NCBI GenBank assembly: GCA_028826165.1
Contig: JAPDFW010000067.1
Coordinates: forward strand, 406,366-470,365
Source of the DNA: Anaeramoeba ignava BMAN
Lineage: Eukaryota; Protista; Anaeramoebae
Direction of reading: 5' to 3'
Length of the DNA stretch: 64,000 nucleotides
Of the stretch, positions 9,701 to 59,196 are shown piece by piece (positions within the stretch are counted from its first letter, which is position 1; each line of letters opens with the position of its first letter). The notes under the pieces are model-generated. The model made no database searches. It saw nothing but the letters and a program-made list of their open reading frames with translations, and was not told the origin of the DNA. The translations under genes were made by a program, and so were the position numbers.

Positions 9701-12700
9701 CAATGGTTATGTTTGTGTTTGTAGCATGGATAACTGGTGCTAATATTGTCGATATTGATGTGTTTGCTTTGCAATTTCTCAAAATAGTATTCTGGATCGT
9801 TAGTGATCCTGAAGATCCTGGAAATTCTGTTTTCATCCACCAATTGTGATTACAATCAATTATAGGTTTAAATGCTGGATTTTTTGCTGTGAAAATTAAT
9901 GATTTTGTTAATGTGAGTTGATTATCATTTGGTGACGAATATGTCCCGTTATTTATCAAAATTGTGAAACCTTCTGATGCTTTTGTTATTCCTTCTTTTA
10001 GTGTTTTGCATGGAAAATCTATGCTCAGACAATCATTTTGGTCATTCCCATTAGTGGAAACATATATTTGTGCTTTTGTTTCATATGTTAGTAGAAATAG
10101 GATTATCAAAATTTTGAAGAACCAACTAATTAAAACAAATTTTATTATTTATAATTTAATTTATAATTTAATTTATAATTTTATTTATATTTTTATTTAT
10201 AATTTTATTTATAATTTTATTTATAATTTAATTTATAATTTTAATTTATAATTTAATTTATAATTTTATTTATAATTTAATTTATAATTTTATTTATATT
10301 TTTATTTATAATTTAATTTATAATTTTTATTTATAATTTTATTTATAATTTTATTTATAATTTAATTTATAATTTTAATTTATAATTTTATTTATTTTAT
10401 TTATAATTTTAATTTATAATTTTATTTATATTTTAATTTATAATTTAATTTATAATTTTATTTATAATTTAATTTATAATTTTATAATTTAATTTATAAT
10501 TTTATTTATAATTTTATTTATTTAATTTATAATTTTATTTATAATTTTATTAATATTTTTATTTATATAATTTTATTTATATTTTTATTTTATAATTTAA
10601 TTTTTATTTTTAATTTAATTTATAATTTTTATTTTATAATTTTTATTTATATTTTATTTTATAATTTTTATTTATAATTTATATTTTATAATTTTATTTA
10701 TAATTTTATTTATAATTTTTATTTATAATTTTATTTATAATTTTATTTATAATTTTATTTATAATTTTATTTATAATTTTATTTATAATTTTATTTATAA
10801 TTTTATTTATATTTTTATTTATAATTTTAATTTATAATTTTATTTATAATTTTAATTTATATTTTAATTTATAATTTTAATTTATAATTTTATTTATAAT
10901 TTAATTTATAATTTAATTTATAATTTTAATTTATAATTCAATTTATAATTTTTTTATATTTTTATTTTTATTTATAATTTTAATTTATAATTTTATTTAT
11001 AATTTAATTTATAATTTTTATTTATAATTTTATTTATAATTTTATTTATAATTTTATTTATAATTTTATTTATAATTTTTATTTATAATTTTATTTATAA
11101 TTTTATTTTATAATTTTATTTATAATTTTATTTATAATTTTATTTATAATTTTATTTATAATTTTATTTTTATAATTTTATTTATAATTTTATTTTATTT
11201 TATTTATAATTTTAATTTATAATTTTTATTTATAATTTTATTTTATAATTTAATTTTATTTTTATTTATAATTTTATTTATAATTTTAATTTATAATTTT
11301 ATTTATAATTTTATTTATAATTTTTATTTATAATTTTAATTTATAATTTTATTTATATTTTAATTTATAATTTTATTTTATAATTTAATTTTATTTTAAT
11401 TTATAATTTTAATTTATAATTTTATTTATAATTTTAATTTTTATAATTTTATTTATAATTTTAATTTATAATTTTTATTTATAATTTTATTTTATAATTT
11501 TATTTATAATTTTATTTATAATTTTATTTATAATTTAATTTTATTTTTATTTATAATTTTATTTATAATTTTATTTATAATTTTATTTATAATTTTAATT
11601 TATAATTTTATTTTAATTTTATTATAATTTAATTTATAATTTAATTTATAAATTTATAATTTTATTTATAATTTTAATTTATAATTTTATTTATAATTTT
11701 ATTTATAATTTTATTTATAATTTTATTTATAATTTTAATTTATAATTTTATTTATAATTTTATTTATAATTTTTATTTATAATTTTATTTTATAATTTTA
11801 TTTTTAATTTTTATTTTATATTTTTTATTTATAATTTAATTTTTTTATTTAATTTATAATTTAATTTATAATTTTATTTATAATTTTATTTATAATTTAA
11901 TTTATAATTTTATTTATAATTTAATTTATATTTTTATTTATATTTTTATTTTAATTTTATTTTTATATTTTATTTTAATTTTATTTTATAATTTTAATTT
12001 ATAATTTTATTTATAATTTAATTTATAATTTTTTTTTTTTATTTTTATTTATAATTTTATTTATAATTTTAATTTATATTTTTTATTTATAATTTTATTT
12101 ATAATTTTATTTTATAATTTTATTTTGTAATTTTATTTATAATTTTTATTTATAATTTAATTTATAATTTAATTTATAATTTTATTTATAATTTTATTTT
12201 ATATTTTATTTTATTATTTTATTTATAATTTTATTTATAATTTTATTTATAATTTTATTTATAATTTAATTTATAATTTTATTTATAATTTAATTTATAA
12301 TTTTATTTATAATTTAATTTATAATTTTTTATATTTTTATTTATAATTTAATTTATAATTTTATTTATATTTTAATTTATAATTTTATTTATATTTTTAT
12401 TTATAATTTAATTTATATTTTTATTTTATAATTTTTTATTTATAATTTATAATTTTATTTATAATTTTATTTATATTTTAATTTATAATTTTATTTATAT
12501 TTAATTTTAATTTATATTTTTATTTATAATTTTAATTTTATTTATATTTTAATTTATAATTTTATTTATAATTTTAATTTATATTTTAATTTATATTTTT
12601 AATTTATAATTTTATTTATAATTTTTATTTATAATTTTATTTTATATTTTAATTTATATTTTAATTTATAATTTTATTTATAATTTTATTTATAATTTTA

Positions 12701-15015
12701 TTTATAATTTTAATTTATAATTTTATTTATAATTTTATTTATAATTTAATTTATAATTTTAATTTATAATTTTATTTATAATTTTAATTTATAATTTTAT
12801 TTTAATTTTTTTTATTTATATTTTAATTTATAATTTTATTTATAATTTTATTTTATAATTTTAATTTATATTTTAATTTATAATTTTATTTATAATTTTA
12901 TTTATAATTTTAATTTATAATTTTTATTTATAATTTTTATTTATAATTTTTATTTATAATTTAATTTATAATTTTAATTTATAATTTTATTTATAATTTT
13001 ATTTTATGAATTTATTTTTATTTTTTATTTTTAATTTTATAATTTTATTTATAATTTAATTTATAATTTTAATTTATATTTTTTTTTTTTAATTTATATT
13101 TATATTTATAATTTATATTTATAATTTAATTTATAATTTTAATTTATAATTTTAATTTATAATTTTATTTATAATTTTTATTTATAATTTAATTTATAAT
13201 TTTATTTATAATTTTATTTATATTTTTATTTATAATTTTATTTATAATTTTATTTATAATTTAATTTATAATTTTATTTATAATTTAATTTATAATTTTT
13301 ATTTTATAATTTAATTTATAATTTTATTTTTATTTTTATTTTTTTTATTTATAATTTTTATTTATAATTTTAATTTATAATTTTATTTATAATTTTAATT
13401 TATAATTTTTAATTTATAATTTTATTTATAATTTTATTTATAATTTTAATTTATAATTTTATTTATAATTTTATTTTAATTTTTAATTTATAATTTTATT
13501 TATAATTTTTATTTATAATTTTATTTATAAATTTAATTTATAATTTAATTTATAATTTAATTTATAATTTTATTTATAATTTAATTTATAATTTAATTTA
13601 TAATTTAATTTATATTTAATTTATAATTTTATTTATAATTTAATTTATAATTTTAATTTATAATTTTTATTTATAATTTTTATTTATATATTTTATTTAT
13701 AATTTTTTTATTTATAATTTTTTTTTATAATTTAATTTATTATTTTAATTTATAATTTTAATTTATATTTTTATTTTATAATTTTATTTATAATTTTATT
13801 TATAATTTTTATTTATAATTTTAATTTATAATTTTATTTATAATTTTAATTTATAATTTAATTTATAATTTTATTTATAATTTAATTTATAATTTAATTT
13901 ATAATTTTTATTTATAATTTTATTTATAATTTTATTTATAATTTTATTTATAATTTTATTTATAATTTAATTTATTTTTATTTTAATTTTTATTTATAAT
14001 TTTTATTTTTATAATTTAATTTATAATTTTATTTATAATTTTAATTTATAATTTTATTTATAATTTTTATTTTTATAATTTTATTTATATTTTTATTTAT
14101 AATTTTAATTTATAATTTTATTTTATAATTTTATTTATAATTTTATTTTATAATTTTATTTATAATTTATTTTTTTTAATTTTATAATTTTATTTATAAT
14201 TTTATTTATAATTTTATTTATAATTTTTATTTATAATTTAATTTTATAATTTTATTTATAATTTTATTTATAATTTTATTTATAATTTTATTTATAATTT
14301 TTATTTATAATTTAATTTATAATTTTATTTATATATTTTTTATTTATAATTTTATTTATAATTTTATTTATAATTTTATTTATAATTTTATTTATAATTT
14401 TTAATTTATAATTTTAATTTATAATTTATTTTTATTTATTTATAATTTTATTTATATTTTTATTTATAATTTTATTTATAATTTTATTTATAATTTTATT
14501 TATAATTTTTATTTATAATTTAATTTATAATTTTATTTATATTTAATTTATAATTTAATTTATATTTAATTTATAATTTTATTTATAATTTAATTTTATT
14601 TTTATTTTATAATTTTTAATTTATATTTTAATTTATATTTTTATTTATAATTTAATTTATAATTTAATTTATAATTTTATTTATAATTTAATTTTTATAT
14701 TTTTAATTTATATTTTTATTTATAATTTTATTTATAATTTTATTTATAATTTTTATTTATAATTTTTATTTATAATTTAATTTATAATTTTATTTATAAT
14801 TTTATTTATAATTTTATTTATAATTTTATTTATAATTTTATTTATAATTTTATTTATAATTTAATTTATAATTTTATTTATAATTTTATTTATAATTTAA
14901 TTTATAATTTAATTTATAATTTAATTTATAATTTTATTTATAATTTTATATATAATTTATTTATAATTTAATTTATAATTTTATTTATTATTTGGATTAA
15001 GAACATTCTTTTCAT
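6741..15015 (-). CDS. Signal peptide + pectin-lyase-like right-handed beta-helix repeats + Cys-rich linker + multi-pass (about 7-9 TM) membrane receptor-like protein; exons 15015-15005 and 10125-6741
   Basis: 1122-aa ORF with YVSTNGND..C..PCKTL start, repeated F..N....GGAI motifs, CxxCP..C.GG...YW...CP.GYC Cys-rich block and hydrophobic C-terminal helices. The ORF-track start is TTG. Splicing ATGAAAAGAAT|GT...AG|TTGGTTC gives MKRIWFFKILIILFLLTYETKAQ, a normal signal peptide. Confidence 0.75.
10140..14990. repeat. ~4.85-kb degenerate AT satellite (unit ~11-12 bp, TTTATAATTTTA / TTTATAATTTAA), intronic
   Basis: Directly visible; only a handful of G/C bases in the whole tract. Confidence 0.97.
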
Positions 15016-26402: not shown

Positions 26403-26529
26403 TTTATTATTAAGTCTTATTAAATTCATTTTTGTGTCATTTGGAAAAGAAAACAAAATTTTTTTTTTTGAATTGTTTAAATTCATTTTTTTTCATTTAA
26501 TTTTTTCAAGTTTTAATCTGATTATTTTA

Positions 26530-27957
26530 ATGAAATTTTTTTCAGCATTTAATCCAATTAGAAATTTTAAATCAATATTTTCAAGACCTTCAAGGAATCA
26601 TATTCAAGCATTTGATGGAATTAGAGCACTTGCTTCTTACTGGATTTTTGCATATCACACAATAGTTTTCTTACTTTGGCTAAGTGAACATGGAATTTTA
26701 AGTAGAGTTCTCCCAAATCCAATTCTAAAAATAATTTTAATGGGAGATTCTTCAGTTGATATCTTTTTTATTCTTTCTGGATTTTTGGTTTATTCAAGAT
26801 TTCTTTCTGAATTAAAGGGGAATACAATTCAAAATTTGGATTTAAGAATAAGATTGAGATATCTCACCAATTTTTTGATCAGAAGATTTCTAAGACTTTA
26901 TCCTTTGATCTATTTTTTCATTTTATTGAAAATTCTTGAATTGGTTGCTCTTAATGATCTTAAAGCAGGAATCCCTCAAATCTTGTTGACAATGTTTTTT
27001 CTAAATGATGTAATAGCAGGAAATGAATATACACCTGTTGGCCATTCTTGGTCTGTTGCAACTGAAATGAAAACATATTTTATTCTTCTTTACATTAAAA
27101 ATCAAATGATGAAAACAGGAAAAGATTCCACAAAATTATTGATAAAGATATTTGTGATTGCTTTGATTGTTTATACAACTGGTGTGATTTTCGCACCAAA
27201 GTTTCATAAATACCCTTTATACACTGAGATTTGGACGGAAGAACTTTGCACACTTTTTCATTTCCAGCCAGAAACAGGAAATTTTATTTTAGAGCATCCA
27301 GAAACTCTTGCTGAAGACAATTTCAGAAGGTTCCTTTTATATTTTGGATTTCATTCAAGACTCCCATTAATTATTATTGGATGTTTTGCTGCTTTTATTC
27401 AATACAGAACATCTTTTCCTGAAAAATGTCAGAAATCCAAACCATTTAGATTAATGATTCTTTTGATTGGATTGATTTTATTTTCATCTTTATTTATTCT
27501 CAAAACAACTCATTATATGTCAAATATTCAAATAGAAAATATTACCATTATTCAACAAATTATCATTCGATTATTTTCTTTTAACAGAATTATCAATTCA
27601 ATAGGTGCTTCTTTATTAATATTACTTATTATCAACAAAGCAGGAATTTTTGGAAATTTCTTCAATTATTTTCTTTCTTTAAAAATTTGGATTCCTTTCT
27701 CAAATCTTTCTTATTCTTTATATTTGACTCAAGTGGTTCCTATTTTTCTTTTGGAAATGGATTTAATCAAAAAATTTGGATTTGATTGGATTGATACTAG
27801 AAATAGTTTTCTTTTGATTTTAAAAGCTACTTTAGTTGTTTATCCTATTTCAATAATTACATTTTTATTGATTGAAAAACCAATGATAAATTTATCACCA
27901 GAAAGATTTAAATTAGAACAATTTATTTCAGGAAAAGAGAAAAAGAAAGAAGATTAA
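26530..27957 (+). CDS. Acyltransferase family 3 (OafA/NRF-6-like membrane O-acyltransferase), intronless
   Basis: FDGIRALA..I..YH, VDIFFILSGFL, RRFLRLYP, HSWSVATE, SYSLYL, IEKP motifs and multiple TM helices. The first ATG is at 26530. Confidence 0.88.
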   Translation: MKFFSAFNPIRNFKSIFSRPSRNHIQAFDGIRALASYWIFAYHTIVFLLWLSEHGILSRVLPNPILKIILMGDSSVDIFFILSGFLVYSRFLSELKGNTIQNLDLRIRLRYLTNFLIRRFLRLYPLIYFFILLKILELVALNDLKAGIPQILLTMFFLNDVIAGNEYTPVGHSWSVATEMKTYFILLYIKNQMMKTGKDSTKLLIKIFVIALIVYTTGVIFAPKFHKYPLYTEIWTEELCTLFHFQPETGNFILEHPETLAEDNFRRFLLYFGFHSRLPLIIIGCFAAFIQYRTSFPEKCQKSKPFRLMILLIGLILFSSLFILKTTHYMSNIQIENITIIQQIIIRLFSFNRIINSIGASLLILLIINKAGIFGNFFNYFLSLKIWIPFSNLSYSLYLTQVVPIFLLEMDLIKKFGFDWIDTRNSFLLILKATLVVYPISIITFLLIEKPMINLSPERFKLEQFISGKEKKKED

Positions 27958-28266
27958 ATAAAACCATTTTAATTTGATTTAAATTAAATTAAATTAAAAT
28001 GATAAAAATAAAGAAAGAAAGAGAATTAAAATTGATTTTTTATTATTCTTGTTTTGAATTGAAAATGAAAATGAAAAGAAAGGAAATTTGGAATTGGAAT
28101 TAAATATCTAAATCAGCTTGAAGTTCTTTTTCTTCTTGTTCTTGTTTTTGATTTAGATTTTTGATTTGTTTTTGATTTTGTTTTTTTGGAATTTGGAAAA
28201 TAGATTGTTTTGAATGTTTTGAAGAAAGAAAGAAAGAAAGAAAATTCAAAAATTAAAATAAGAAGC

Positions 28267-48523: not shown

Positions 48524-48690
48524 TTAATTACTTTTTTTTCTTTTCAATTCTTTTCTCTTCTTAATAAATCGTTAAATAAAACAAAATTCCTCAATTTTCA
48601 TTTTTTTTATCCCTAATTCCTATTTTTTTCATTTTTTTCATTTTTCATTTTTTTTCATTTTTTTTTTAATCATTTTTTTTTTTAAATAAA

Positions 48691-49821
48691 ATGATTGAAG
48701 AAGATATTGATTATCAAGCTATTGTTATTGATAATGGTTCATTTGAAATTAGATCAGGTTTTGCTGGAGATGATTTACCAAAAAAGAATACAAGAAATAT
48801 TATTGGAAATTTAATAAATGAATCGAATTTAACAAATTTATCTAAATCACAATATATTGGAAATGAAGCACAAGAAAATAAAGAAATATTAAATTTAAGT
48901 TATCCAATTCAAAAAGGAATTATTGAAAATTGGGATAATATGGAGAAAATGTGGCATCATATCTTTTATAATGAACTGAAAATTGCACCTGAAGAACATC
49001 CAGTTTTAATAGCTGATTCTCCATTTAATCCAAGAAATTCTAAAGAAAAAATACAACAAATCATGTTTGAAACATTTAATACACCAGCATTTTATCTTGC
49101 AAATTCAGGAATATTAACATTATATTCAACAGGAAGAACAACTGGATTTATTTTTGGAATTGGACATGAAATTACTTTTACTGAACCAATTTATGAAGGA
49201 TATGAAATTTATAATATAATTGATCAATATCAATTTGGAGGAAATGATTTAACAAATTATTTGATTAAATTACTTAAAGAACAAGATTATTCATTTGATA
49301 AATCAAGTGATATTGAAATTGCAAGAGATATTAAAGAAAAATTATGTTATTGTTCTCTTAATTTTCAACAAGAATTAAATCAAAATGAAACTGAATTAGA
49401 AGAAGCTTATGAATTAAAAAATGGAGATATTATCAGTATTTCAAACGAAAGAATTAAATGTTGTGAATGTTTATTTGAACCTAAAATAATTGGAATTGAT
49501 TTAGAAGGAATTCATAAATTAATTTATAATTCAATAATGAAATGTGATATTTCATCAAGAAAAGATTTTTTCAATAATATTATATTAACAGGAGGAACAA
49601 CATTATTTCCAAATTTTAAAGAAAGACTTGAAAAAGAAATCAAACAAATTATTCCTGATAAAATGGAAATTAAAATTATTGCAGATCCAGATAGAAAATA
49701 TTCATCATGGATTGGAGGTTCAATTTTAGCATCACTTTCTACTTTCCAATCTGTATGGATTTCAAAAGAAGAATATGATGAAAGTGGACCTAGTATTATT
49801 AGACGGCGTGGAGTTTTTTGA
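48691..49821 (+). CDS. Divergent actin-like protein (copy 1)
   Basis: VIDNGS..GFAGDD.P, WDNMEKMWHHIFYNELKIAPEEHPVL, MFETFNTPAFY, RDIKEKLCY, RKYSSWIGGSILASLSTFQ..WISKEEYDESGP. Confidence 0.92.
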   Translation: MIEEDIDYQAIVIDNGSFEIRSGFAGDDLPKKNTRNIIGNLINESNLTNLSKSQYIGNEAQENKEILNLSYPIQKGIIENWDNMEKMWHHIFYNELKIAPEEHPVLIADSPFNPRNSKEKIQQIMFETFNTPAFYLANSGILTLYSTGRTTGFIFGIGHEITFTEPIYEGYEIYNIIDQYQFGGNDLTNYLIKLLKEQDYSFDKSSDIEIARDIKEKLCYCSLNFQQELNQNETELEEAYELKNGDIISISNERIKCCECLFEPKIIGIDLEGIHKLIYNSIMKCDISSRKDFFNNIILTGGTTLFPNFKERLEKEIKQIIPDKMEIKIIADPDRKYSSWIGGSILASLSTFQSVWISKEEYDESGPSIIRRRGVF

Positions 49822-49966
49822 ATTACTTTTTTTTTTAAAATTTTTCCATTTTCTTTCTCTTTTTTTTCTTTTTTCAATTTTAAAAAGCAAAAAAATATTT
49901 TTTTTATTTTTTTAAATGACGTTTTTCTTTTTTTCATTTTTCTTATTTACTTCTAAATAAAAATAA

Positions 49967-51229
49967 ATGTTTGACGATTTTTTTGACAGTTTTGGTTTTG
50001 AAAATTCTACAAGTGATTCTGATGGTATTTTTGGTGATTCTACATACAAATTGACAGAGACTAATAGTCAATTCATTTCCAATCAGAATAATTATAAAGC
50101 TATTGTTATTGATAATGGTTCATTTGAAATAAGATCAGGTTTTGCTGGAGATGATTTACCAAAAAAGAATACAAGAAATATTATTGGAAATTTAATAAAT
50201 GAATCGAATTTAATAAATTTATCTAAATCACAATATATTGGAAATGAAGCACAAGAAAATAAAGAAATATTAAATTTAAGTTATCCAATTCAAAAAGGAA
50301 TTATTGAAAATTGGGATAATATGGAAAAAATGTGGCATCATATCTTTTATAATGAACTGAAAATTGCACCTGAAGAACATCCAGTTTTAATAGCTGATTC
50401 TCCATTTAATCCAAAAAGTTCTAAAGAAAAAATACAAGAAATCATGTTTGAAACATTTAACGTTTCAGGATTTTATCTTGCAAATTCAGGAATATTAACA
50501 TTATATTCAACAGGAAGAACAACTGGATTTGTTTTTGGAATTGGACATGAAATTACTTTTACTGAACCAATTTATGAAGGATATGAAAGTTCAAATATAA
50601 TTGATCAATATCAATTTGGAGGAAATGATTTAACAAATTATTTGATTAAATTACTTAAAGAACAAGATTATTCATTTGATAAATCAAATGATACTGAAAT
50701 TGCAAGAGATATTAAAGAAAAATTATGTTATTGTTCTCTTAATTTTCAACAAGAATTAAATCAAAATGAAACTGAAAACCAAAATCAAAATGAAACTGAA
50801 TTAGAAGATATTTATGAATTAAAAAATGGAGATATTATCAGTATTTCAAATGAAAGAATTAAATGTTGTGAATGTTTATTTGAACCTAAAATAATTGGAA
50901 TTGATTTAGAAGGAATTCATAAATTAATTTATAATTCAATTATGAAATGTGATATTTCATCAAGAAAAGATTTTTTCAATAATATTATATTAACAGGAGG
51001 AACAACATTATTTCCAAATTTTAAAGAAAGACTTGAAAAAGAAATTAAACAAATTATTCCTGATAAAATGAAAGTTAAAATTATTGCAGATCCAGATAGA
51101 AAATATTCATCATGGATTGGAGGTTCAATTTTAGCATCACTTTCTACTTTCCAAAATATGTGGATTTCAAAAGAATTATATAGTGAAAGTGAGGATGAGG
51201 ATATGATGAGTTATGGCGGATTATTTTGA
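49967..51229 (+). CDS. Divergent actin-like protein (copy 2; acidic N-terminal extension, altered C-terminus)
   Basis: Same core as copy 1, with ~37 extra N-terminal residues and an ENQNQNET insertion. Confidence 0.9.
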   Translation: MFDDFFDSFGFENSTSDSDGIFGDSTYKLTETNSQFISNQNNYKAIVIDNGSFEIRSGFAGDDLPKKNTRNIIGNLINESNLINLSKSQYIGNEAQENKEILNLSYPIQKGIIENWDNMEKMWHHIFYNELKIAPEEHPVLIADSPFNPKSSKEKIQEIMFETFNVSGFYLANSGILTLYSTGRTTGFVFGIGHEITFTEPIYEGYESSNIIDQYQFGGNDLTNYLIKLLKEQDYSFDKSNDTEIARDIKEKLCYCSLNFQQELNQNETENQNQNETELEDIYELKNGDIISISNERIKCCECLFEPKIIGIDLEGIHKLIYNSIMKCDISSRKDFFNNIILTGGTTLFPNFKERLEKEIKQIIPDKMKVKIIADPDRKYSSWIGGSILASLSTFQNMWISKELYSESEDEDMMSYGGLF

Positions 51230-51361
51230 ATTATTTTGAATTATTTTTTTTTTTAAAATTATGATTGACTTTTCAAATATTTTTTCATTTTTTTATTTTT
51301 CATTTTTTTCATTTTTCATTTTTCATTTTTTTTCATTTTTTTCATTTTTTTTTTAAATAAA

Positions 51362-52489
51362 ATGATTGAAGAAGATATTGGTTATCAAGCTATTGTTATT
51401 GATAATGGTTCATTTGAAATTAGATCAGGTTTTGCTGGAGATGATTTACCAAAAAAGAATACAAGAAATATTATTGGGAATTTAATAAATGAATCGAATT
51501 TAATAAATTTATCTAAATCACAATATATTGGAAATGAAGCACAAGAAAATAAAGAAATATTAAATTTAAGTTATCCAATTCAAAAAGGAATTATTGAAAA
51601 TTGGGATAATATGGAAAAAATGTGGCATCATATCTTTTATAATGAATTAAAAATTGCACCTGAAGAACATCCAGTTTTAATGGCTGATTCTCCATTTAAT
51701 CCAAGAAATTCTAAAGATAAAATAAAACAAATCATGTTTGAAACATTTAATACACCAGCATTTTATCTTGGAAATTCAGGAATATTAACATTATATTCAA
51801 CAGGAAGAACAACTGGATTTGTTTTTGGAATTGGACATGAAATTACTTTTACTGAACCAATTTATGAAGGATATGAAATTTATAATATAATTGATCAATA
51901 TCAATTTGGAGGAAATGATTTAACAAATTATTTGATTAAATTACTTAAAGAACAAGATTATTCATTTGAAAAATCAAATGATACTGAAATTGCAAGAGAT
52001 ATTAAAGAAAAATTATGTTATTGTTCTCTTAATTTTCAACAAGAATTAAATCAAAATGAAACTGAATTAGAAGAAGCTTATGAATTAAAAAATGGAGATA
52101 TTATCAGTATTTCAAATGAAAGAATCAAATGTTGTGAATGTTTATTTGAACCTAAAATAATTGGAATTGATTTAGAAGGAATTCATAAATTAATTTATAA
52201 TTCAATAATGAAATGTGATATTTCATCAAGAAAAGATTTTTTCAATAATATTATATTAACAGGAGGAACAACATTATTTCCAAATTTTAAAGAAAGACTT
52301 GAAAAAGAAATCAAACAAATTATTCCTGATAAAATGGAAATTAAAATCATTGCAGATCCAGATAGAAAATATTCATCATGGATTGGAGGTTCAATTTTAG
52401 CATCACTTTCTACTTTCCAATCTGTATGGATTTCAAAAGAAGAATATGATGAAAGTGGACCTAGTATTACTCGTGGTCGATTATTTTAA
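51362..52489 (+). CDS. Divergent actin-like protein (copy 3)
   Basis: Near-identical to copy 1. Confidence 0.92.
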   Translation: MIEEDIGYQAIVIDNGSFEIRSGFAGDDLPKKNTRNIIGNLINESNLINLSKSQYIGNEAQENKEILNLSYPIQKGIIENWDNMEKMWHHIFYNELKIAPEEHPVLMADSPFNPRNSKDKIKQIMFETFNTPAFYLGNSGILTLYSTGRTTGFVFGIGHEITFTEPIYEGYEIYNIIDQYQFGGNDLTNYLIKLLKEQDYSFEKSNDTEIARDIKEKLCYCSLNFQQELNQNETELEEAYELKNGDIISISNERIKCCECLFEPKIIGIDLEGIHKLIYNSIMKCDISSRKDFFNNIILTGGTTLFPNFKERLEKEIKQIIPDKMEIKIIADPDRKYSSWIGGSILASLSTFQSVWISKEEYDESGPSITRGRLF

Positions 52490-52598
52490 ATTACTTTTTT
52501 TTTTTAAAAATCAAAAAATAAGAGAAGAAATTTATTTTTCATTTTTAAAAAATCAGAAAAATAATTTTTCATTTTTTTTCATTTTTTTTTTAAATAAA

Positions 52599-53726
52599 AT
52601 GATTGAAGAAGATATTGATTATCAAGCTATTGTTATTGATAATGGTTCATTTGAAATTAGATCAGGTTTTGCTGGAGATGATTTACCAAAAAAGAATACA
52701 AGAAATATTATTGGGAATTTAATAAATGAATCGAATTTAATAAATTTATCTAAATCACAATATATTGGAAATGAAGCACAAGAAAATAAAGAAATATTAA
52801 ATTTAAGTTATCCAATTCAAAAAGGAATTATTGAAAATTGGAATAATATGGAAAAAATGTGGCATCATATCTTTTATAATGAATTAAAAATTGCACCTGA
52901 AGAACATCCACTTTTAATGGCTGATTCTCCATTTAATCCAAGAAATTCTAAAGATAAAATAAAACAAATCATGTTTGAAACATTTAATACACCAGCATTT
53001 TATCTTGGAAATTCAGGAATATTAACATTATATTCAACAGGAAGAACAACAGGATTTGTTTTTGGAATTGGACATGAAATTACTTTTACTGAACCAATTT
53101 ATGAAGGATATGAAATTTACAATATAATTGATCAATATCAATTTGGAGGAAATGATTTAACAAATTATTTGATTAAATTACTTAAAGAACAAGATTATTC
53201 ATTTGAAAAATCAAATGATACTGAAATTGCAAGAGATATTAAAGAAAAATTATGTTATTGTTCTCTTAATTTTCAACAAGAATTAAATCAAAATGAAACT
53301 GAATTAGAAGAAGCTTATGAATTAAAAAATGGAGATATTATCAGTATTTCAAACGAAAGAATCAAATGTTGTGAATGTTTATTTGAACCTAAAATAATTG
53401 GAATTGATTTAGAAGGAATTCATAAATTAATTTATAATTCAATTATGAAATGTGATATTTCATCAAGAAAAGATTTTTTCAATAATATTATATTAACAGG
53501 AGGAACAACATTATTTCCAAATTTTAAAGAAAGACTTAAAAAAGAAATCAAACAAATTATTCCTGATAAAATGGAAGTTAAAATTATTGCAGATCCAAAT
53601 AGAAAATATTCATCATGGATTGGAGGTTCAATTTTAGCATCACTTTCTACTTTCCAATCTGTATGGATTTCAAAAGAAGAATATGATGAAAGTGGACCTA
53701 CTATACTTACAAGAAAAATATTTTGA
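52599..53726 (+). CDS. Divergent actin-like protein (copy 4)
   Basis: Near-identical to copy 3. The true start MIEEDIDYQ at 52599 is inferred from the paralogs. Confidence 0.92.
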   Translation: MIEEDIDYQAIVIDNGSFEIRSGFAGDDLPKKNTRNIIGNLINESNLINLSKSQYIGNEAQENKEILNLSYPIQKGIIENWNNMEKMWHHIFYNELKIAPEEHPLLMADSPFNPRNSKDKIKQIMFETFNTPAFYLGNSGILTLYSTGRTTGFVFGIGHEITFTEPIYEGYEIYNIIDQYQFGGNDLTNYLIKLLKEQDYSFEKSNDTEIARDIKEKLCYCSLNFQQELNQNETELEEAYELKNGDIISISNERIKCCECLFEPKIIGIDLEGIHKLIYNSIMKCDISSRKDFFNNIILTGGTTLFPNFKERLKKEIKQIIPDKMEVKIIADPNRKYSSWIGGSILASLSTFQSVWISKEEYDESGPTILTRKIF

Positions 53727-53851: not shown

Positions 53852-56800
53852 TTAAAGACCGATTCTTCTTGGTTTTCTTCTTGGAGTTCCAATATAAGAT
53901 TGTTTCAAACTATTCTTTTTACTATTAATTAATTTTCTTCTTTTTTGCTCTTCCATTTTTTCTCGATCTTTTTGGATTTGCTTTTCCAAGAGTTCCTTTT
54001 CCATATTAAGCAAATCCTGCTTTTGTTTTTCGTTTTTTTTTCTAAGAGATTGATCTGCAAAATTGAGTCTTAAAGAAAAAAACATAGGACCAAGTTGAGC
54101 GAGCCATTCGGGCTCTACAGCAGTAACGCACTGCATAAACTCTTTTGTAGTCATGACTAGTTCGTGGTACACAACGTAGTCAGGCGTGAAACCTGATCCG
54201 TATAGAGAACTTGTGGGATGCAAGTGGCAAGTTAGGCCTGTTCGTAAATTAACATATTCAACTAATCCTTTGATTTTTGACGCGTGATGAAAAAATGCGG
54301 AACAAATCGATTTGCGAACAAGATCCCAGTTTGATTCGCATGAGATGTACTTGATTTCTTGTTGCTTCATTATCTCAAGTAGTTGTGAACGAACTTCTCT
54401 TACTCTTCGAAGTGCTTTGATATGAATAAAATGTTCAGCTGCCCAATCAGAACTATAATGATTTGCTTTCCATTGTTGATATACATTCAGCAACGTCAGA
54501 TGATCTGATTCTGGAACGAAGAATTTTTCTCTTTTTGGAATCACTTTCATCTTCACGATCTTTTGGTCGGAAGAAAATTGAAGGAACAGAAAGCATTGAA
54601 ACTATTGTTAATATTTCTGCTGAACATCCCAGTTCGACTGATTTAATTAACATTTTTGAAAGTGGTGGATCCAATGGGAATTCTACCATTTTTGCTCCAA
54701 GTTCTGTTAGATCTCCTGTGTTGTCCAGTGCTCCTAATATCCAAAGTTGATACATTGAGTTCAACATGTTGTCATGTGGTGGTGGATCCATAAATTCAAA
54801 TTCTAGTAGATCGTCAATTTCTAAGGATTTTAATAAAAGTACAACATTTCCAAGATTTGTTCTTTGAATTTCTGGAATTGTATTTTCGAGGAGTTCTTCT
54901 GAATATTGTCTGTATGTATAAAGTCGGAAGCACTTTTATATTTTAAAATAAATTTTAAATAAATTTTAATAAATTTTAAATAAATTTCAAATAAATTTTT
55001 AAATATATTTTTAATTATATTTCAATTATATTTTTATATTTCAAATAAATTTTAAATTAATTTCAAATAAATTTTAAATTATATTTTTATATTTCATGTT
55101 TTTGGAATATTTCAATTAAATTTTAAATTAATTTTAAATTATATTTTTATATTTTTAATTAAATTTTAATTATATTTTTATATTTCATGTTTTTGGAATA
55201 TTTCAATTTAAAATTTAATTAAATTTTAAATAAATTTCAATTTAATTTTACAGTCCCAGGTCCTGTTCGCCCAGCTCTTCCTGATCTTTGATTTGCTGCT
55301 GCTTTAGATATTGGTGTAACAGTTAAAGCATCCATCCCAATTTTTGGATTATATACCTTTAATTTGGAATAACCACAATCAACAACATATAAAATACCAT
55401 CAACAGTTAAAGAAGTTTCAGCAATATTAGTAGCAACAATACATTTCCGAGCATTATTTGGTGCTTTATCAAATATTCTTGCTTGAAGATCTGATGGTAA
55501 TTGAGAATATATTGGTAAAATTGCAAGTGGAAGAACATCATCTCCTAATTTTTTAAGTCGATCAGAAATACAATAACAAGTTGTTTCAATATCTTCTTGT
55601 CCAGTCATAAAAACTAATATATCTCCTGGTGGTTTTGATAAATGTATTTCAATGGTTTGCTTAACAGCTGCTTCAACATAATCTTCTAATGGATATTTTG
55701 AATATCGAATCTAAAAAAAAGTTTGTTTTTTGTTTTAATAAATTTTGTTTTTTGTTGTTTTTTTTGTTTTTTGAATAAATTTCTTACTTGAACAGGAAAT
55801 GTTCTTCCAGGAATTTCGAAAATTGGTGCATTTCCAAAGAATGAAGCAAATTTATCAGCATCCATTGTTGCTGAAGTTACAATTAATTTCATATCTCTAC
55901 GAGCAGAAACAATTTTTTTCAAAATACCAAATAAAACATCTGTATGAAGAGATCTTTCATGAGCTAAAATAGAAATATAATAATAAAATTAAATTAATAA
56001 AAAATTTTCCAAAAACATGAAATGAAATGAAATGAAATGAAAACAAACCTTCATCCATTACAACACAACTATATTGTTCCAAATTTGATTGATGCAATGA
56101 TTCTCTTAATAAAACACCGTCAGTCATGTATTTAATAATTGTTTTATCCTTAGTAGAACAATCCTCAAATCTAATTGAATATCCAACCAAATCTCCTAAT
56201 TCACAACCCATTTCTTCACTAACTCTTTTCGCAACTGATACTGCGGCAACTCTTCGTGGTTGTGTGCATCCAATAATCCCACCTTTTGTATATCCTTCTT
56301 CATGTAAGTATTGAGTTAATTGTGTTGTATTATGAGTGATTGTGAAATTATCTGTCAAATAAAGATGAGATTCGTCATCAATATAAATACATTGGCATAA
56401 ATCCTCTCCTATTTTTTCAATTTTAACTATTCTTTTTTCCAATTTATAACTTCCAAATTTTTCGATTTCTGTTTTCTTTGAATTGTCTGAAAAGAATTGC
56501 TCCAAATTTTGATGATAAATTCTCGTTCTCCATTTGTTTCTTGATATTCCATCAATTTTGCAAATTCCTCCAAGAGAATAAACGATTAGTTTAATTGAAT
56601 TGATTAATTTCAATGAACTTGATTCAAAATAAATGTTACATTTCCCATCAAATATGTTTATTTTGCCTGAAAAATCAAGGAATCCGTTCAGAATATTAAT
56701 ACGGATTTCTTTCGAATTATAAATATAATCATTTGGAATAAAAGTACTTTTATCGTTGTTTATATTTTGAAGATTGTATTTCCCAAGATTAAGTTTGATT

Positions 56801-59196
56801 TCGTTGATTTCTTCAAGCGAATAATTTGGGAAAAATTTGGAAAAAGTTTGTGGATCAGAAACAGAAGATTTTTGAGATAATAAAAAGCCAAGTAAATAAG
56901 GATCAATTCCAACATTTTTGGAAGCAAAATGAACAAATTCTGGGGTATCGATTGAAAATCTATATTTTCTATTTGCATTATTATGATTTAAATTTGCGTC
57001 GGAATCAATAAAAAGATTTTTCATCAAATAACTGCAAGAAAGAACTTTTTTAGATTGTGATTTTTTATCATTCACAAACCACAAATGATCCAAACTACAA
57101 TCCACAAATTCATCCAAATCAAAGTGTACTCTATAAACATCAATTTTTCCCTGTGGATAAACATTCAGTATTTTAGAAATTTTTCCATTTGGAGTGCAAA
57201 CATAGTCGCCAATCTTGAGATCCCCATTGTGTTTTGGACCGTTTGGAGTATAAACAGTTGCTGAGTTGCGCAGACTTTTTCCTGAACCTGTTTGTCCAAC
57301 AACAATTACGATGGAATTATCGCGAATAACCTTCATCAAATTTTCTCTGCAATGGAAAATAGGAAGATACTCTCGCTGTTGTTTGAGCGTTTTAGTGCGT
57401 GAAAATTCACTGACTGCTTGAGTTTTTTCTTTTAAATGATGCGCATATTGACTTGATTTTTTGTAATCAACAACTTCGCTGTCTGGAGTGTTGGTTGTTT
57501 GATTAGTTGGTTGTGTATTTTCTTGAGGATTTGTATTTTCGTTTTCCAAAGAAAATTTTTCGTCTCCTTGAAGAAGCTTTGGTTTTTCTTTGATTCCTAT
57601 TGAATCTCCCATTTTGGAGCCAGCAATCTCCCAAAACCGTTGACGAAACTTCATTTTCTCTCTTTCCTTTCGCATTTCTCTTAATAAATTACTTCCTTTT
57701 TTGGCAAATTTGGCAAGATCCGATCCAGGATCCCTAACAGTTAATACAGGTTCTTTTTGCTTTGTAAATGCGATTCTTCCATCTAAAAAAGGCGGTTTCA
57801 AATCATGAACCATAACGCTAATGCGTGATTCATCCTGCTCTATTTGCGTGTTTTCCTCCTTTTGTGTTCTTTCAACAACACCACTAGTGATTAATCTGTT
57901 TTCCTCCCAATTGTCATTTTCTCGATTGATTTGGTTTTGTCTTGCTGTCAATTTTTGTGTTTGTCTGACAGCTAAAGATTGTTCAACAGATTCGAATTTT
58001 TCCAATTTTCCATAAAATGTATTTGAAGTTGATTCAACAGCTCCTGATTCTTCAGCATCGTACCAATTCCGCTCCACATCGATCTCAGCTTCCTCAAATT
58101 CCTTCAATCTTTCTTCGAACTCCTCGTCAGTTTCATCGTCTTTTTTCTCGAGAAACTTTGGCTTCGTGGTTTTTTTCACGTTGCCTTTGTTTTGACTGAA
58201 CCATTTGTTGTATTTGTATGATGGCGTTGCTAATGGTGTTCGATATGCTTCAAATGTTTGAGATGGTTTTCTTTGGGGTGTTGGATCCCATTCTGAGTTT
58301 TTATTTCTTTGTGGTGTTCTTCCATCCCATGATGTTTTTTTAAGTGTTTCTATTAGTTCTTCTCCTGATACTTTCGTTTTTAATTTTGGGTCTTTTATAT
58401 CCCATCCGCTTTCTTTTTCTTGGATTTTCTTTATTTCTGAATAGTGGATTCCTTTTTGCATTCCTTTTTTTCTTTCTTCTATTTGTTGGAGTGTTTTTTC
58501 ATTAACTCCTCCTGTGTGAAAAGGTGTTGGTGGTTGAATTTGTCGATATTTTTGTGTTCGAAATTTTGTTTGATTTTTTTCATTTGTTTCGTTTGAATCA
58601 TTTGAATAATTTTTTTCATTTTTATTTGAATTTGAATAATTTGAATAATTTGAATAATTTTTTTCATTTTTATAATTTGAATATTTTGAATATTTTGAAT
58701 ATTTTGAATTTTTTGAATTTGAATCTGAATATGAATAATTTGGATAATTTTTTTCATTTATTTCATTTGAATCTGAATATTTTGAATCTGAATATGAATA
58801 ATTTGGATAATTTTTATAATTTTTTTCATTTGAATTTGAATATAAATTCTTATGTTTTCTTGAGTTGATAGAAATATCATTATTTTCATCTCTATGTTTA
58901 TATGAATATTTTTCATCTCTATGTTTATATGAATATTTTTCATCTCTATGTCTATATGAATGTTTTTCATCTCTATGTTTATGTGAATGCTTTTCATTTA
59001 TATTTTTATTTATATTTTCATTTATATTTTCATTTATATTTTTATTTGTATTTTTATTTGTATTTCCATTTATATTTCCATTTATATTTCCATTTATATT
59101 TTCATTTATATTTTTATTTTCTTTTGGAGGTAAAATTAAACCACCGTCATCTTCAATAATTTCTTCAAGTCTTTCTGAATTAATAGAAAATTCCAT
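53852..59196 (-). CDS. PRP16: Pre-mRNA splicing DEAH-box helicase Prp16/DHX38 (intein-containing precursor); exons 59196-56049, 55963-55788, 55710-55252, 54932-53852
   Basis: Prp16-specific [38 protein letters not shown]; motifs GQTGSGK[intein][19 protein letters not shown]|[40 protein letters not shown] +1 frameshift lies in an A-run near 54535. Confidence 0.95.
56329..57276 (-). mobile_element. Intein (316 aa, Hint domain + degenerate LAGLIDADG homing endonuclease) in the Prp16 Walker A motif
   Basis: In-frame 948-nt insertion between GSGK and TT. Starts [13 protein letters not shown], block B CSLDHLW, blocks [22 protein letters not shown], followed by Thr+1. Confidence 0.95.

Follow-up and report, generated by a model that had tools for sequence, protein, structure and literature searches.

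In a 64,000-nucleotide stretch of the genome of Anaeramoeba ignava BMAN (contig JAPDFW010000067.1, positions 406,366 to 470,365; called the window below, with positions counted from its first letter), the gene for the spliceosomal helicase Prp16 is interrupted by an insert that divides the Walker A motif, or P-loop, of the encoded protein. The identification of this insert as an intein, put forward in a first-pass annotation made from the sequence alone, is supported by the host motif that reappears on its removal, by its Hint-domain residues, by matches to structures in the Protein Data Bank (PDB) and to a family profile, and by the fold of a sister intein. We consider it very likely that this is a selfish class-3-type intein of phage or prokaryotic ancestry, residing at the GK/T site of Prp16 (slashes mark junctions here and below) and belonging to a published family of P-loop inteins known as 'cluster 1'.

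An insert in the Walker A motif of Prp16

Among the open reading frames (ORFs) listed for the 64-kb window is one of 1,079 codons on the minus strand, which begins at 59196. Positions 56329-57276 of that strand, 948 nucleotides or 316 stop-free codons, encode ORF residues 641-956, and the junctions read GQTGSGK / SLRNS...ITHN / TTQLTQYL, such that the Walker A motif is cut at GK/T. Coordinates, open frame and junctions all agree with the in-frame insert in motif I that had been proposed. The parts of the insert and its flanks are as follows.

57277..57297, minus strand: N-extein half of Walker A, GQTGSGK, with Lys640 as residue -1 (sequence; ortholog consensus)
56329..57276, minus strand: intein of 316 amino acids with Hint and LAGLIDADG domains (open frame; PDB match to gp41-1; family profile; sister fold)
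57067..57276, minus strand: N-terminal Hint region, with Ser1 (57274-57276), Ser61 (B:7), His64 (B:10; 57085-57087) and Trp66 (B:12; 57079-57081) (alignment with 60 relatives)
56452..56916, minus strand: LAGLIDADG homing endonuclease domain, probably inactive, with Gln135 (56872-56874) and Ser203 (56668-56670) at the catalytic Asp sites (alignment of relatives; Pfam)
56329..56445, minus strand: C-terminal Hint region, with Cys296 (F:4; 56389-56391), Thr314 (G:5), His315 and Asn316 (alignment with 60 relatives)
56305..56328, minus strand: start of the C-extein, TTQLTQYL, with Thr957 as both the +1 nucleophile and the Walker A Thr (sequence; ortholog consensus)

Alignment with intein-free orthologs confirms that taking out the insert restores Walker A. 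The motif runs without interruption in 116 of the 119 best Prp16 homologs (the other three lack it), and in 74 of the 119 it reads GETGSGK/TTQLTQYL. The distance from GK to the DEAH motif is about 90 residues in Prp16 homologs, and the window copy agrees once the insert is discounted. Moreover, the GK/T site is empty in Prp16 of A. flamelloides and in other DEAH paralogs found in A. ignava. A search of the A. ignava genome for an intein-free Prp16 copy found none, and both Prp16 copies that were found carry the intein.

The insert itself resembles known inteins. In a search of PDB sequences it matches variants of the gp41-1 intein at both ends (E 9.6e-8), and a profile of 71 family members matches the structures of gp41-1, PI-SceI and the class 3 inteins MchDnaB1 and MsmDnaB1, with E from 4e-21 to 1e-11 against gp41-1 and the class 3 DnaB inteins. 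Similarly, the fold of a sister intein from dynein, which is 48% identical and was the only model used for fold comparison (predicted local distance difference test, pLDDT, 94), matches PI-SceI and other inteins that combine Hint and endonuclease domains. This sister is retained in a 2,858-amino-acid ORF of an A. ignava EukProt protein with a TransDecoder-style name. At an E-value of 0.001 the insert has 9,921 relatives, many of which sit in PhoH, terminase, RecA, DnaB, ClpX and SNF2 proteins and contain LAGLIDADG domains. GK precedes the intein in 196 of the 252 full-length relatives, and Thr or Ser follows it in 244.

The splicing route

Class 3 inteins are defined by a W-C-T triplet (PMC2807308), which is present here as Trp66 (B:12), Cys296 (F:4) and Thr314 (G:5) and had gone unmentioned in the first-pass annotation. 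The features named in the first-pass annotation, an N-terminal Ser, a block-B His, a terminal His-Asn and a Thr at +1, are also found, as Ser1, His64 (B:10), His315-Asn316 and Thr957. Conservation across the 60 closest relatives is 100% for His64, Trp66, Cys296, Thr314, His315 and Asn316, and the triplet occurs in 238 of the 252 full-length relatives. Position 1 varies, being Ala in 159 of these 252, Glu in 18, Gly in 16 and Ser in 14 (intein starts were assigned by alignment offset, and a few may be one residue off); the triplet is retained by all 14 relatives that begin with Ser. Because the triplet is kept while position 1 varies, position 1 does not behave as a conserved nucleophile. Thr957 provides the Ser or Thr that class 3 inteins require at +1, and Ser1 departs from the original 2010 description of the class, in which the first residue is non-nucleophilic. 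By signature, the Prp16 intein is class-3-like, and its splicing probably starts at the internal Cys296 rather than at Ser1.

From these residues we propose the following sequence of events. Three GT-AG introns would be removed from the transcript and the insert kept in the mRNA; the resulting precursor would be about 1,620 amino acids long (a length obtained by arithmetic). Cys296, aided by His64, Trp66 and Thr314, would then attack the Lys640-Ser641 peptide bond, the N-extein would be transferred to Thr957, Asn316 would cyclise, and an O-to-N shift would rebuild GSGK-TT to yield a mature Prp16 of about 1,300 amino acids (likewise by arithmetic). With the P-loop divided in the precursor, ATPase activity would wait on splicing. 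Of the Walker A residues, it is Lys640 and Thr957 that make the contacts with phosphate and Mg2+. The precursor should thus be ATPase-dead, a state cited for a RadA precursor with a P-loop intein (PMC6195587), and it is reasonable to suppose that ATP binding by Prp16 depends on protein splicing. A separate observation concerns the N-junction at 57274-57297, where Ser1 leaves the unspliced precursor with the pattern GxxxxGKS, itself a Walker A pattern; the same is true of the sister inteins.

Several observations weigh against a class-3-type intein at this site. Pfam and NCBIfam models of Hint and intein domains give no match to the insert. Clear relatives of the insert are also barely matched by the same models, however, and we therefore read the missing match as a gap in the libraries. 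In addition, the NCBI record for a second copy of this gene, KAJ5075069.1, is titled 'pre-mRNA-splicing factor ATP-dependent RNA helicase prp16 [Anaeramoeba ignava]', without the 'intein-containing' label that the hosts of sister inteins bear. Finally, Ser1 is shared by all eight P-loop sisters in A. ignava, so that a class 1 route keeps some plausibility. By that route, the same intein would splice with Ser1 performing the first N-to-O shift and Cys296 merely assisting, or both routes would operate. Such a mechanism, implied in the first-pass annotation, is also favored by the Ser at B:7 and by the original class 3 definition, which demanded a non-nucleophilic residue 1 and left cases with Ser or Cys plus WCT open, three such inteins being already on record (PMC2807308). 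Against it stand the Cys in place of Asp at F:4, the missing Thr of the TxxH motif, and the prevalence of Ala at position 1 in the family. Tori and Perler are said to have assigned a Ser1-bearing intein, that of Catera Gp206, to class 3 in 2011. Class 3 inteins can dispense with an N-terminal nucleophile; Cys F:4 attacks the N-junction and its loss stops splicing (PMC5222942). Given the class 3 signature, the class 1 route is probably wrong; we judge it unlikely, though it is the most plausible of the alternatives considered here.

Host gene, second copy and alternative explanations

The Prp16 gene of the window consists of four exons and three introns.

56049..59196, minus strand: exon 1, from the ATG to the middle of the DEAH motif, holding the intein (ORF list; tblastn with KAJ5075069.1; boundaries)
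55964..56048, minus strand: GT-AG intron 1, 85 nucleotides, 14% GC (guanine plus cytosine), dividing DE/AH
55788..55963, minus strand: exon 2 (tblastn with KAJ5075069.1; boundaries)
55711..55787, minus strand: GT-AG intron 2, 77 nucleotides, 14% GC
55252..55710, minus strand: exon 3, RecA2 domain (best PDB matches Prp16/DHX38)
54933..55251, minus strand: GT-AG intron 3, 319 nucleotides, 5% GC
53852..54932, minus strand: exon 4, with a one-base frameshift in a run of A near 54536 (tblastn; PDB search)

That the host is Prp16, as first annotated, holds up when exons 3 and 4 are searched separately against the PDB: Prp16/DHX38 ranks first for each (E 9e-67 and 8e-61, respectively), and structures of DHX8/Prp22, DHX16/Prp2 and Prp43 rank below it in both searches. 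The DEAH motifs are intact, and the C-terminal 436 amino acids of the second gene copy are about 70-75% identical to Prp16 orthologs. Immediately downstream of Prp16, a tandem array of divergent actin-like genes occupies 48600-53726.

The second copy, which corresponds to KAJ5075069.1, lies inverted about 88 kb upstream on the same contig (L021, G000:C68:372-378 kb). It forms part of a duplicated and inverted stretch, 21 kb or more in length, that includes the Prp16 gene, in which window positions 41672-61720 and 26445-28087 pair, in inverted orientation and at 92-97% identity, with G000:C68:370005-390662 and 400026-401666. This match represents either a segmental duplication or a second haplotype placed on the same contig. 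A palindrome centered on an AT satellite at 10-15 kb was also considered and ruled out, there being no inverted match within the window; the satellite itself spans about 4.9 kb (10100-15000) and is nearly pure A/T (0% GC).

Both copies contain frame-breaking slips of +1 in runs of A. The window copy has one, in exon 4 near 54536 (54530-54540), which the first-pass annotation does not mention; at that point the second copy keeps its frame. Four slips in the second copy cluster within about 105 nucleotides of the endonuclease part of the intein, and many lie in its 5' part. The NCBI model KAJ5075069.1 spans the four slips with a GT-AG intron inside the intein. These indels are probably consensus errors of the assembly in two functional copies or alleles, although the intron inside the second intein could be genuine rather than a product of assembly error. 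The record is due for correction, as it bridges frameshifts by an intron within an intein and is not labeled as intein-containing.

The slips, together with the position of the gene in a large inverted duplication, are what might suggest that the window contains a pseudogene or a duplicate produced in assembly, and that the functional Prp16 is not the intein-bearing one described here. We regard this as very improbable. Where they encode the helicase and the intein, the two copies differ by six substitutions, every one of them synonymous, an outcome with a chance of about 6e-5, and the frame-breaking indels all fall in A-runs, as errors of long reads do. Furthermore, with no empty Prp16 copy found in the genome and the intein present in both copies, a functional Prp16 needs the intein removed either way. 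Removal could in principle take place in the RNA, the insert being a spliceosomal or self-splicing intron. The base composition of the insert (28% GC, versus 32-35% in the exons) and a GT located one base inside it are in keeping with such an intron, but no AG lies near the 3' junction, the real introns of the gene are short and have only 5-14% GC, and the insert, open throughout, carries the conserved catalytic residues of a Hint domain at each end. The missing AG and the conserved catalytic residues make removal at the RNA level scarcely credible, and an intein that is excised from the protein accounts best for the insert.

Sister inteins and known systems

The endonuclease domain of the Prp16 intein is probably inactive, judging from its sequence. 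At the first catalytic site, 54 of 58 relatives from outside Anaeramoeba have Asp or Glu where the Prp16 intein has Gln135; at the second, 54 of 58 have Asp where it has Ser203. Likewise, the Pfam LAGLIDADG_3 model gives E 0.17 for the Prp16 intein versus 7e-12 for a relative. With both catalytic Asp residues lost, the intein is probably no longer mobile, and it would persist since nothing but its exact loss is tolerated. The Prp16 intein and its sisters share 46-76% identity over the N-terminal Hint region versus 17-28% over the middle, the pattern to be expected from selection on splicing and decay of the nuclease.

Besides Prp16, inteins that begin with Ser at GK/T occur in A. ignava in two dynein P-loops, two kinesins, a Brr2/ASCC3-like helicase, a Rad51 paralog and a second DEAH helicase, which by its motifs we take to be Dhr1/DHX37-like. 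A more distant relative with Ala1 is found in a CHD/SNF2 protein of the same species. A quick maximum-likelihood tree, built without the two copies of A. ignava inteins that come from databases and with long branches flagged, groups the eight Ser1 inteins in a single clade with a support of 95 in the Shimodaira-Hasegawa-like approximate likelihood ratio test (SH-aLRT).

Other loci of the genome show related features. A DEAH paralog that lacks an intein and whose motifs resemble those of Prp43 (L038, G000:C82, ~880 kb) has a spliceosomal intron 9 nucleotides past its empty GK/T site, which fits the idea that introns block homing (PMC10710043). In the hosts of the Brr2/ASCC3-like (L040, G000:C18) and CHD/SNF2 (L018, G000:C71) inteins, the frame is broken right before the N-junction of the intein, apparently by an intron that falls inside the P-loop codons or immediately behind them. 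Dynein is present in three copies (L013, L017 and L019), and its first P-loop intein is frameshifted as assembled in G000:C113:182675-183611 and open on C35 and C92.

A bolder reading is that the Ser1-plus-WCT inteins are more than passive relics. Their catalytic Cys might render splicing sensitive to oxygen or the state of thiols, in which case this anaerobe would have Prp16, its kinesins and cytoplasmic dynein, the Rad51 paralog and the ASCC3/Brr2-like helicase jointly gated by one nuclease-dead family. Redox control has a precedent in Msm DnaBi1, a class 3 intein of a P-loop (PMC6195587); we consider a joint gate of this kind a long shot. A link between the redox disulfide of Msm DnaBi1 and a block B Cys matching Cys60 of the Prp16 intein was considered and dropped, as the partner is the non-conserved Cys48 (PMC6195587).

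The Prp16 intein is real but already known: its host, the cluster of P-loop inteins to which it belongs and its class 3 character all appeared in print in 2023. The first-pass annotation had anticipated that the allele might be catalogued, and the main text of Gallot-Lavallee et al. (PMC10710043), which describes 103 inteins in A. ignava BMAN, names Prp8 and Prp16 as RNA-processing hosts. Because Prp16 of A. flamelloides is empty and that of A. ignava has one insert only, the published Prp16 intein should be this allele. According to that text, cluster 1 inteins have atypical N-terminal residues, of a kind that phages show too, and appear to be class 3, and in its Fig. 6B all of them lie in the P-loops of unrelated proteins and branch together; the A. 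ignava clade described above reproduces this cluster. Three Anaeramoeba inteins were confirmed experimentally, the Prp16 intein not being among those given in the main text. A 2018 survey of eukaryotes does not include Prp16 among its common nuclear intein hosts (PMC5784728), which makes this host unusual outside Anaeramoeba.

We see the Prp16 intein as a clear example of intein movement between non-homologous P-loops. It is also a useful test case for the splicing route of eukaryotic inteins that combine Ser1 with WCT, a matter that the main text of the 2023 study leaves unsettled.

Among known systems, Anaeramoeba cluster 1, as presented in the main text of PMC10710043, is the closest match, with the same organism and contig, Prp16 host, Walker A site, class-3-like character and atypical residue 1, and the comparison turned up no difference. 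Both descriptions also agree on a single clade spread across unrelated P-loop proteins, with nearest outside relatives in PhoH, terminase, RecA and DnaB proteins of phage type. Phage and bacterial class 3 inteins (MP-Bethlehem DnaB, Msm and Mch DnaB1, Dra Snf2 and MP-Catera Gp206) likewise share Trp B:12, Cys F:4, Thr G:5, His B:10, the His-Asn end and Thr at +1, and they too are inserted in the P-loops of helicases and ATPases. The Prp16 intein differs from them in having Ser1 rather than their Ala or Pro, and in residing in a nuclear, intron-containing eukaryotic gene. Unlike Msm DnaBi1, whose redox partner Cys48 is described as non-conserved, it has no demonstrated counterpart of that residue. 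The inteins of Prp8 and VMA1 in fungi and other eukaryotes begin with Cys and splice by the class 1 route. They resemble the Prp16 intein in being nuclear, in occupying an essential spliceosomal protein (Prp8) or an ATPase (VMA1), and in the Hint and LAGLIDADG architecture also seen in PI-SceI. However, they lack the W-C-T triplet, with Trp at F:4 in the Prp8 inteins (PMC2807308), and they represent a separate lineage, with an identity of about 14% between PI-SceI and the dynein sister intein when their folds are superposed.

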